Virus record (IMG/VR): IMGVR_UViG_3300041402_000314
Coordinates: 62,001-126,000 of that record
Length of the DNA stretch: 64,000 nt
Direction: 5' to 3' (one strand)
Positions 26,665 to 55,619 of the stretch are shown here, piece after piece. Within the stretch, counting starts at the first letter, position 1. Each line of letters begins with the position of its first letter. Below the pieces are notes generated by a model, which made no database searches, had not been told where the DNA came from, and worked only from the letters and a program-made list of their open reading frames with translations. Both the position numbers and the translations under genes were made by a program.

Positions 26665-26781
26665 GGGAGAGTGGCGAAATTGGTAAACGCATCCTTATTA
26701 GGTCTGATACTCTTGCTGATAAGTTAGGACTGAACAGGATGGTGAGCAAGCACTTTGTAGGTTCGATTCCTACCTCTCCCA
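26665..26781 (+). tRNA. tRNA-Leu(UAG)-like gene with ~31-nt insertion in the anticodon loop; CCA not encoded
   Basis: Acceptor GGGAGAG/CTCTCCC + A73; Leu-type D arm GGCGAAATTGGTAAACGC; long variable arm; T arm GTAGG-TTCGATT-CCTAC; ATCCT/AGGAT encloses 40 nt. Confidence 0.7.
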
Positions 26782-50115: not shown

Positions 50116-50218
50116 TATATAAATAATTAAAAGAGAGTTAGCTAACTTACGGGAATAGGTTAGCAACAGGTGGAGTAAGTTACCTGATGTCCTCTCTCAC
50201 ATCTATTTATATAAGGAG
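50116..50218 (+). repeat. Structured cassette, copy 3 (leader of the GIY-YIG gene)
   Basis: TATAAATA..AGAGAG, GCTAAC/GTTAGC, CAGGT-GGAG-/ACCTG, TGTC-CTCTCT..TATTTATATAAGGAG; matches the reverse complement of copies 1 and 2. Confidence 0.85.
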
Positions 50219-50225
50219 TAAGATC

Positions 50226-51266
50226 ATGCCAAACCCACCATTCTATACTTACGTTCTATTAGACCCTCGTAAAAAAGGAAACTATATTTATAATGGATTC
50301 TCATTCGATTATGAGCCGTTCTATTTCGGTAAAGGAATTAACGGTAGATGTAATGACCATATCAGCGAAGCTATCAATACCGATAAAAATAGACCTAAAT
50401 TAAATAAAATAAGAAAAATTCTCAAAGTTGGGAGGAAACCTATTATAGTTAAAGTCTTAGAAAATATTGATGAGCAAACAGCATTTGATAATGAAATAGA
50501 ATCAATAGCCGAGATAGGTCGAGCTGATTTAGGTTTAGGTCCACTAACTAACCTAACTGATGGTGGAGAAGGTGTAAGTGGTAGAATTATGTCTGATGAA
50601 GAAAAGAAATTACGAAGTCAAATATTAACTGGTATCAAAAAACCGCCTAGAACAGATGAACATAATAAAAATTTAGGTAATGCTGTTAGTGAAGCATGGC
50701 AAAATAAATTAGAAGAAGGATTTGAGTGGTCTGATGAAACCATTAATAAAAGAGCTGAATCTAATAGAGGTCAAACTAGAACAGATGAACAGAAACAGAG
50801 AATGAGCGTGTCTCAAATAATTTATTGTTCGGATGAGAAAGTTCGTGAAATGAAATCAGAAATATCACTCGAATATTATTCTTCTGAGGAAGGCGAACAA
50901 ACCAAACAACAAATATCAGCTAATCTCGTTTCCTTCTATGATACTGAAGAGGGTCAAGCTCTTAAAGATCATCTTTCATCTATTAACACAGGAGAAAATA
51001 ATCCTTTATATGGAACTAAAAATTCAGTTGAAACCATAGAGAAACGTGCAGCTACTAGAAAGAAAAATGGTCATTGGCAGATAAGTGAAGAGGAATTGTT
51101 TGAATCCTTTTCTAATGGACAGAAGAAACGATTTTCTGACCCAGAAGAGAGACGAAAGCAGAGCGAACGATTAAAGGGTAGGCGTTGGTATAATAACGGT
51201 AAACAACAAGGCCAATACCATCCAGATAAACGGCCTGATGGATGGGAATTAGGTAGATTAAGATAA
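50226..51266 (+). CDS. GIY-YIG (LEM-3/ANKLE1-like) homing endonuclease with NUMOD3-like repeats
   Basis: FYTYVLLDPR, PFYFGKG..GR...H, E...I...GR, LTNLTDGGEG, NPLYG, WYNNG. Confidence 0.85.
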   Translation: MPNPPFYTYVLLDPRKKGNYIYNGFSFDYEPFYFGKGINGRCNDHISEAINTDKNRPKLNKIRKILKVGRKPIIVKVLENIDEQTAFDNEIESIAEIGRADLGLGPLTNLTDGGEGVSGRIMSDEEKKLRSQILTGIKKPPRTDEHNKNLGNAVSEAWQNKLEEGFEWSDETINKRAESNRGQTRTDEQKQRMSVSQIIYCSDEKVREMKSEISLEYYSSEEGEQTKQQISANLVSFYDTEEGQALKDHLSSINTGENNPLYGTKNSVETIEKRAATRKKNGHWQISEEELFESFSNGQKKRFSDPEERRKQSERLKGRRWYNNGKQQGQYHPDKRPDGWELGRLR

Positions 51267-53117: not shown

Positions 53118-53518
53118 CGATACCCATATTTATTTGTATGCAAAAGGCCATTATATTGAAACGGATACTCTCGAAGACATGAAGAAAATTGTAGCAGAAC
53201 GATGTGGTTTTAATGCTGAAGATGTTAGGGTTAAAGACATACAATCAATATTGACAAGTATAGCATTTAAGATTATAATCAACTCAGGCAACCCAGAACA
53301 TTTTTTTGATGATTTTATTGAAGGTATTTCTCCTGATAATATGTGGAGAATTATGACAAAACAAAAGATGGAAGATTATGATTTCAATTTAGCAGTTATC
53401 GAGAAGTGTTTGAGCGTAATAAGATTTGTTAGTGTGAAAGACGATGATGGTAATCGTATTCTGGAACTTGATGAGCCTAATGGAAATATATTACCACTTA
53501 AAATGGATTGGGATAAAA

Positions 53519-54283
53519 ATGAAACTAAGATTTGTATCTGATTTACACCTAGAATTTAATTATGAGCCAGAAGTTGTAGATTCATTTATCCCTCATATGG
53601 ATACGGATAGTGAAACTATATTAGCTTTACTTGGTGATATTCATGTAGGTAAAGAAGTAGTTCCTTATCTCGATGAAATGTCTAAGAGGTTTAAGTATGT
53701 AATTTATATACTAGGTAATCATGAATTCTACAATAATAAATTTTATGACTTAAAGAATCAACTACTCGATAAGACTTTTCATATACCCAACCTACATATT
53801 ATAGAGGACGGAACGGTGATTCTCGATGGGCAGAAATTTGTAGGCTGTACTCTATGGTCTGATATGGAAGGCGGTAGAGAAGGGAGTATATTAAACGTAG
53901 GTAAAGGTTTGAATGATTATTTCCGTATAATGGGTACTGATGGTAGAAGGTTAACGACTAAGGAAACCATTAATGCCCATGAATATTCTATAGAGTATTT
54001 AAAGAAGTATGTGGATGAAGATACGGTAGTTTTAACGCACCATGCGCCTAGTATTGGTTTAAGTGACCCTCAGTTTAAGAATTCTCCTATTAAAGGTGGG
54101 TTTGAATCTGATTTGATGGATTTAATATTAGAAACCCGACCTAAGTATTGGTTATATGGTCATACACACTTTAATAAAGGCGAATCTATCATAGAAAATA
54201 CTACACTATTATCTAATCAATTAGGTTATATTGATATGGGCGAGAAGCTTAATTATAATCCTAAACTGATTTTAGATATTTAA
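53519..54283 (+). CDS. Calcineurin-like metallophosphoesterase
   Basis: SDLHLEF, GDI, GNHEFY, THHAP, WLYGHTH, NQLGY. Confidence 0.92.
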   Translation: MKLRFVSDLHLEFNYEPEVVDSFIPHMDTDSETILALLGDIHVGKEVVPYLDEMSKRFKYVIYILGNHEFYNNKFYDLKNQLLDKTFHIPNLHIIEDGTVILDGQKFVGCTLWSDMEGGREGSILNVGKGLNDYFRIMGTDGRRLTTKETINAHEYSIEYLKKYVDEDTVVLTHHAPSIGLSDPQFKNSPIKGGFESDLMDLILETRPKYWLYGHTHFNKGESIIENTTLLSNQLGYIDMGEKLNYNPKLILDI

Positions 54284-54293
54284 TTAATTTCTC

Positions 54294-54354
54294 TTGACAT
54301 TCCAACTCCGACATGTTATAGTATATTTGTAAGTGACCGAAACGTTCTTTAACA
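54294..54354 (+). promoter_or_regulatory. Sigma70 promoter followed by a boxA-like antitermination element
   Basis: TTGACA 54294, N17, TATAGT 54317; CGTTCTTTAACA 54343-54354 resembles rrn boxA TGCTCTTTAACA. Confidence 0.7.
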
Positions 54355-54363
54355 ATTGAATAG

Positions 54364-54691
54364 TTAAGATTTTAGGTAGAGGGTTAGGACAGAAAAATTG
54401 ATGAATCGATGACAGGAAAAGAGGACGCACACCCTAGCGATTGAACGAGTAGCGAGTAATTCGGGAATTGAGTACCGATGGTAGTGGGGAAACTCCGTAA
54501 ATCCAGTAGCAAAAGGGATATGGGATTAGGCTCTGTGAGAATTGGGATACCGAAGCGAGGCAAGTGGCACTATCACCTGAAAAGGTAACGGACTCTCATA
54601 TCTGATAGTGAATCGTATGTTACCAGTGACCGAACCTGAAACAAGTCATATGACTGAGACACTGTGATTAACCTTCTTTCTAAAAACTTAA
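54364..54691 (+). ncRNA. Large structured ncRNA of unknown class (~330 nt)
   Basis: No ORF of 60 aa or more; GC-richer; long closing stem TTTTAGGTAGAGGGTTA/TAACCTTCTTTCTAAAA; GAAA tetraloop hairpins; internal helices. Confidence 0.7.
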
Positions 54692-54889
54692 TTGGAGATA
54701 AAGAAGATGTTTAGATACATATTACTTATTATATGGTGGGTGATAGTTGATTTGATGGTCGATAATGTATTATTATGGGTTTTAGCTCTATTAATAGGTA
54801 ACATGACAATATTGATCTATATCGGCTCGTTACCATATAAGAAGGTTAAAATTTTTAATATAAGAATGAAACTTTAAGGAGAATATAAA

Positions 54890-55243: not shown

Positions 55244-55619
55244 ACTATAAAGTAGGTCATATAACCTATAAAAGAGGTGTAGAAAATGTCAACCAAAAAT
55301 TTATCTGAAGCTAAGAAAATTACAGGGGTGATGGTTATTATTGCAACTATCCTAAGTTTATATGTTTATTTCATATCGCCTTACGTTAATGACTACGTTA
55401 ATGACTACGTACAAACTAAATTCTCCACAAATACTGAGACGATAAAATATAAAGATATTTCGAAAGATGTGCAATATGTAGGGTTTCAACTTTATGAGGC
55501 AGGAGTCCAAAGAGGTGTATATGAATCACTCAACGAACTCATTAAATATGGTGCTGAAGATTTTAATACTAAACGTGTGATAGATCGAGCAATGAAATCA
55601 TTAATAAAGGAGACTGAAA

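Follow-up and report, generated by a model that had tools for sequence, protein, structure and literature searches.

[quoted passage not shown] Large structured RNAs of unknown function, GOLLD and ROOL, are borne by phages or prophages (10.1101/2024.12.08.627333), have an ornate conserved fold without an obligatory protein partner, measure roughly 550-800 nt and lie next to tRNA genes. Processive antitermination elements, such as the lambda nut sites, HK022 put and the Bacillus EAR element, are promoter-proximal and co-oriented with the downstream genes, and nut sites contain boxA. Finally, 6S RNA, Y RNA and SRP RNA are stable bacterial RNAs whose ends pair in a long stem.

Here we describe an intergenic region of a phage that combines some of these features and matches no catalogued RNA family. 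The window analyzed is a 64-kb stretch of the 204-kb contig IMGVR_UViG_3300041402_000314. The portal, prohead protease, scaffold and gp23 genes at 45-50 kb mark the contig as a distant T4-like myovirus, with a portal protein only about 37% identical to its best hits, which are marine T4-like phages; a free-standing GIY-YIG/NUMOD3 homing endonuclease gene (50187-51263, +) lies directly after gp23. An earlier note, based on the sequence alone, proposed that the region 54294-54691 encodes a structured non-coding RNA with its own promoter, a boxA-like element and a long closing stem that cannot be assigned to a known class. This central inference is supported by our analysis, although the stability and processing that the note also proposed are not shown.

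The locus and its transcription signals

The region lies between a metallophosphoesterase gene (53516-54283) and small ORFs of unknown function that start at 54708. All sequence elements listed in the earlier note were found in place. The GC content is 0.40-0.48 inside the region, against 0.27-0.35 in the flanks, and only short ORFs are present. The elements of the locus, with helices named according to the comparative fold described below, are as follows.

54294-54322 (+): sigma-70-type promoter, with -35 TTGACA (54294-99), a 17-nt spacer and the extended -10 TGtTATAGT (54314-22)
54344-54354 (+): boxA-like element GTTCTTTAACA, about 15-25 nt into the predicted transcript
54366-54392 (+): 5' strand of the closing helix P1 (54366-87), plus ACAG (54389-92), pairing with 54662-54689
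54409-54427 (+): 5' strands of P8 (54409-13) and P7 (54422-24, plus CG 54426-27), flanking the conserved internal loop with GGAAAA
54428-54437 (+): 5' strand of P2 (CACA, one unpaired C, CCTAG), pairing with 54526-30 and 54534-37
54438-54525 (+): variable peripheral domain closed by P2, including the window-specific insertion (about 54467-54500)
54526-54537 (+): 3' strand of P2 (TTAGG, CTC, TGTG)
54541-54553 (+): 5' strands of P4 (54541-45) and P5 (54547-49, 54551-53)
54550-54567 (+): 18-nt block CCGAAGCGAGGCAAGTGG, identical in all copies found, the last 14 nt of which form the 5' side of an asymmetric internal loop
54568-54610 (+): P6 hairpin (54568-75 with 54603-10), with a variable insert that includes the CCT-GAAA-AGG hairpin
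54611-54627 (+): invariant AATCGTA (3' side of the core loop and P5), then the 3' strand of P4 (54623-27)
54628-54649 (+): junction GACCGAA, the 3' strands of P7 (54635-37, with CG 54631-32) and P8 (54645-49), and the GAAACAA loop
54662-54691 (+): CTGT, then the 3' strand of P1, directly followed by the RBS GGAG (54694-97) and the ATG (54708) of the next ORF

The promoter matches 11 of 12 consensus positions, has a TG at 54314-15 and is among the best three sites in 6 kb. The boxA-containing sequence CGTTCTTTAACA starts at 54343; positions 54344-54354, about 22 nt after the -10 element, match the gamma-proteobacterial boxA consensus GYTCTTTAANA exactly (PMC5725501), and TCTTTAACAATT is 12/12 identical to the boxA of the E. 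coli rrnB leader. Since the motif occurs 3 times in the window against 0.65 expected, it is weak evidence by itself; what counts is its place just after the promoter and its retention in two related contigs, L003 and L004, where it reads GTTCTTTGACA and ATTCTTTGACA, respectively. The -35 and the TGn element are also kept in these two contigs, whereas the spacer sequence differs. The motif TATATTTG (54322-54329), of the type seen upstream of many more distant homologs, overlaps the end of the -10 element in the window copy but is not conserved in L003 or L004. No intrinsic terminator is predicted after P1. Further downstream, GTAGGTCATATAACCTATAAA (55252-55272), followed by an RBS, precedes the ORF at 55286; it occurs once in the window, a near-identical element follows the RNA gene in L003 (L003:1618-1650), and it may be a phage promoter or regulatory site.

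Homologs and their distribution

The window (all 64 kb) and the homolog loci were scanned against the 4227 families of Rfam 15. No hit was obtained in the RNA, either at the gathering score (window and 19 homolog loci) or at E <= 10 (window copy and 8 homolog loci), and this includes the models for GOLLD, ROOL, OLE, raiA, HEARO, RNase P RNA, 6S RNA, SRP RNA, tmRNA (for which ARAGORN was also negative), the group I and group II introns and rRNA. An intron is further argued against by the position of the element after the stop codon of the phosphoesterase gene, which ends at the same residues in L009, a relative that lacks the element. Elsewhere in the window, a hit to the Rfam tRNA model (26665-26781, +; 44 bits) has about 33 extra nt in the anticodon arm and a long variable arm; ARAGORN reports no tRNA anywhere in the window, and this may be an intron-containing or otherwise unusual phage tRNA. 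Searches with blastn of the window RNA and of a homolog against 50,697 GenBank phages gave no match apart from one chance hit in a Bacillus phage sigma-factor gene, and literature searches for the core motif returned only unrelated primers.

Relatives of the phosphoesterase led to L003 and L004, close T4-like relatives that carry the element at the same site. The 3' 185 nt of the RNA are 98% (L004) and 93.5% (L003) identical to the window, whereas the adjacent phosphoesterase is 77% and 87% identical, respectively. By contrast, other relatives of the phosphoesterase gene (L005-L011, L013-L016) lack the RNA, including L009 (L009:1212-1281) and L013 (L013:1072-1151), which have no such element at that site although their phosphoesterases are 76-80% identical. 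The distribution is patchy and moron-like. In more distant relatives (L005:1-10000; L008:6767-7732), the phosphoesterase gene sits among RNA repair and tRNA maintenance genes, namely RtcB, a CCA-adding enzyme with an HD domain, a DHH phosphoesterase and an RNA ligase.

An exact scan for a 19-mer from the conserved part of the RNA found 24 metagenome and 6 genome loci, 17 of which were confirmed by a profile search, and a scan of IMG/VR added more. After removal of identical and near-identical copies, 17 distinct sequences were aligned (19 before two of them, L025 and L044, were dropped): the window copy, the two in the T4-like relatives and 14 in marine phage contigs. They form about 12 lineages that are 47-87% identical pairwise, with a median of 57%. 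The new loci come from marine samples, have 27-38% GC and carry NinG, DnaB, large terminase and portal genes. The 18-mer CCGAAGCGAGGCAAGTGG is identical in all 17 distinct copies, and relaxed 16-mer scans of IMG/VR returned only chance matches inside coding regions; the block is therefore effectively fixed among detectable members, with the caveat that this is partly circular because the 18-mer was the search key.

No protein neighbor is conserved in the divergent loci, the downstream genes are unrelated between lineages, and no tRNA genes are nearby. In 9 of the 14 homologs outside the T4-like trio, a TAnnTTT[GA] motif, apparently the Bacteroidetes -7 promoter element, lies 13-39 nt upstream of P1, in which case the transcript would start at or just before P1. 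In one homolog, L026, the 22-nt segment TTTGCATTATATTATTACTTAA, which includes a TAnnTTTG promoter motif, occurs on both sides of the RNA gene (L026:60-131 and L026:438-480), as if the cassette had been inserted or shuffled at promoter sequences. In most homologs, the 5' strand of P1 carries GTTCTTTGA and begins with (A)GTTC(T/A)TTGA, while the 3' partner varies, which argues for sequence-specific recognition. This motif resembles boxA, as the Firmicutes rrn boxA probably reads GTTCTTTGAAAAC, and it may be the boxA of the respective hosts. In the T4-like trio, the P1 strand has lost the motif, and a separate boxA of the gamma-proteobacterial type lies upstream, behind a sigma-70 promoter, which fits a requirement for a boxA that suits the host.

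A fold supported by covariation

Folding energy alone is not significant for the window copy (z = -1.42), and the support for a structure comes from the comparison with homologs. The closing helix P1, about 21 bp (54366-87 with 54668-89 in the window), continues into a rod made of P8 (54409-13 with 54645-49), a conserved internal loop (GGAAA(A/C) opposite (G/T)AAAC-type sequence) and P7 (54422-24 with 54635-37, plus CG/CG). A three-way junction follows, one arm of which is P2, closing the variable domain, whereas the other consists of P4 (54541-45 with 54623-27), an almost invariant P5, an asymmetric loop of 14 identical nt opposite AA, and the P6 hairpin, with an insert that varies from 0 to about 70 nt in homologs. 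Across 42 tested pairs, 88.1% of cells pair, against 32-40% when the partner is slid by 1-3 columns, 25 pairs show changes on both sides, and 0 of 500 shuffles reach any of the five measures. The columns of P1 covary across the 17 sequences, 5 of 6 pairs of P4 and all 8 pairs of P6 have changes on both sides, and the long-range helix P7, scored at a fixed register, pairs in 65 of 68 cells with nine different 4-bp combinations, compared with 13-32 of 68 in slid registers. P8 appears with different sequences in each lineage when the inner domains are replaced by a tetraloop. In the homologs L032, L038 and L026, which MAFFT offsets by one column, the outer P2 helix, by our reading of the segmented sequences, is GAAG/CTTT instead of CACA/TGTG, a compensatory change. 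Four of the six P5 pairs never vary and two show uncompensated mismatches, so P5 cannot be tested by covariation. It should be noted that, in the window sequence, the homology-constrained fold is 21 kcal/mol less stable than the free MFE fold. A local hairpin around GGAAAC conflicts with the covarying P7, and a 3-bp CGC/GCG hairpin in a segment designated block C is sterically incompatible with the extended P2.

Of the pairings listed in the earlier note, the closing stem (54364-86 with 54669-91) and the helix CACTATCA/TGATAGTG, here P6, are real and covary. The ACCT-GAAA-AGGT hairpin is present and peripheral, and a similar CACC-GAAA-GGT hairpin sits at the same place in L032, L038 and L026, but not in the other homologs. 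The GGG-GAAA-CTC hairpin lies in the insertion that L004 lacks and that differs in L003; the same insertion contains CCGATGGTAGTG (54475-54486), which is 12/12 identical to E. coli 5S rRNA (rrfB nt 70-81, the loop E region; E = 0.1 in that small search) and may be a chance match or a borrowed loop-E module. The pairings CAGTG/CACTG, TGTGAGA/TCTCATA and GGTAAC/GTTACC are not supported, since CAGTG overlaps the covarying 3' strand of P4, TGTG is the 3' strand of P2, paired with CACA 54428-31, and the arms of the last lie in a variable insert and in the P4 region. Accordingly, the pseudoknots or alternative folds suggested in the note are not supported.

No reading frame is conserved: in each frame through the core, the stop-free stretch is only 9-13 codons in some homologs, and indels among the window, L003 and L004 are not multiples of three.

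Possible origin of the transcript and mode of action

That this is a real structured RNA gene, about 325 nt long and representing a new family, is well supported (probability about 0.9). Its biogenesis is inferred from sequence signals: host RNA polymerase would start at about 54329, the boxA would recruit NusB/S10 and the other Nus factors, as on ribosomal RNA operons, allowing the long untranslated transcript to escape Rho termination and bringing its two ends together, and P1 would work like a leader-trailer helix that clamps the ends, protects the RNA and may be an RNase III site. The enclosed RNA, about 280 nt, is not 16S-, 23S- or 5S-like, with only boxA and scattered 8-12-mers shared with rRNA. 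Although its function is not shown, we favor a trans-acting accessory RNA, a host-takeover or counter-defence factor that uses the core internal loop (AGCGAGGCAAGTGG opposite AA, next to AATCGTA) to bind a protein or RNP conserved across host phyla. This inference rests on the autonomy and patchy distribution of the cassette, the lack of conserved neighbors, the length of P1, which is too long for a switch, and the identity of the core in phages whose promoter and ribosome-binding styles point to different host groups. The core shows no antisense signal, as shuffled probes pair better than the core itself with E. coli 16S, 23S, 5S and tRNA-Glu. Taken as a whole, including the trans-acting mechanism, this reading remains tentative (probability about 0.45).

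The main rival, which we consider unlikely but not negligible, is a cis-acting leader that makes RNA polymerase resistant to termination for the downstream genes, with the large fold replacing a phage antiterminator protein. The RNA sits directly after a promoter, carries a boxA-like motif and always has the same orientation as the genes that follow, and ORFs start 17-60 nt after P1 in many loci with no clear terminator; in the window, where the next ORF starts 17 nt after P1, the RNA could be the 5' part of an mRNA. However, put and EAR are 65-120 nt, whereas this RNA is about 300 nt with an ornate three-way junction, closed on itself by P1, which sequesters the boxA-like strand once it is transcribed. 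No N-like protein or boxB is recognizable, about half of the homologs have a T-rich stretch, or a second promoter, right after P1, and the downstream genes are unrelated between lineages. The latter also makes a riboswitch-like sensor improbable, notwithstanding the complex fold, the highly conserved pocket-like loop and, in the window, an RBS 3 nt after P1: at 15-25 bp, P1 is far longer than switching P1 helices, and no conserved expression platform is present.

A catalytic RNA or a self-assembling RNA-only particle, such as ROOL, GOLLD or OLE, is also doubtful but cannot be excluded. Strong conservation of unpaired core positions alongside variable peripheral helices, the absence of a conserved protein partner and the phage-borne location are compatible with this possibility, whereas the lack of similarity to any ribozyme model in Rfam, a size half that of ROOL or GOLLD, the absence of nearby tRNA genes and the lack of recognizable conserved palindromic loops for kissing contacts are not in its favor. 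Compared with 6S, Y and SRP RNA, the paired ends likewise form a rod with conserved internal loops, and a role in binding a conserved protein is likely, but the distal end is a three-way junction with an invariant asymmetric loop rather than a central bubble (6S), a tRNA-like module (YrlA) or the SRP domain IV motif. A chance structure, a small protein gene or a recombination scar between gene cassettes might be suggested by the modest folding z-score and the patchy distribution, but this is already contradicted by the compensatory changes in six helices among 17 distinct copies, the identity of the core across phages whose other genes are unrelated and the lack of an open frame. More speculatively, and with low likelihood, the identical asymmetric loop could be an active site or a high-affinity decoy site, making the RNA either a new class of large ribozyme or RNA-only assembly, or a phage RNA that neutralizes a widely distributed host protein, such as a defence nuclease or a component of the translation or transcription apparatus; either would work across bacterial phyla, with production coupled to the host's rRNA antitermination machinery.

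Complex structured RNA classes are rare, and each well-supported one, as with riboswitches, ribozymes and RNA cages, has opened new biology. At the level of RNA class the present family is new, with a covariation-supported three-way-junction fold and an unusually rigid core, while its biogenesis logic resembles that of rRNA operons and its orphan status that of GOLLD and ROOL. The window copy has E. coli-type signals. The family occurs in phages with different promoter and ribosome-binding styles, so it probably addresses something universal in bacteria. It appears to borrow the cell's ribosomal-RNA production logic, boxA plus a leader-trailer helix, which would be a new use of Nus-dependent antitermination by phages.
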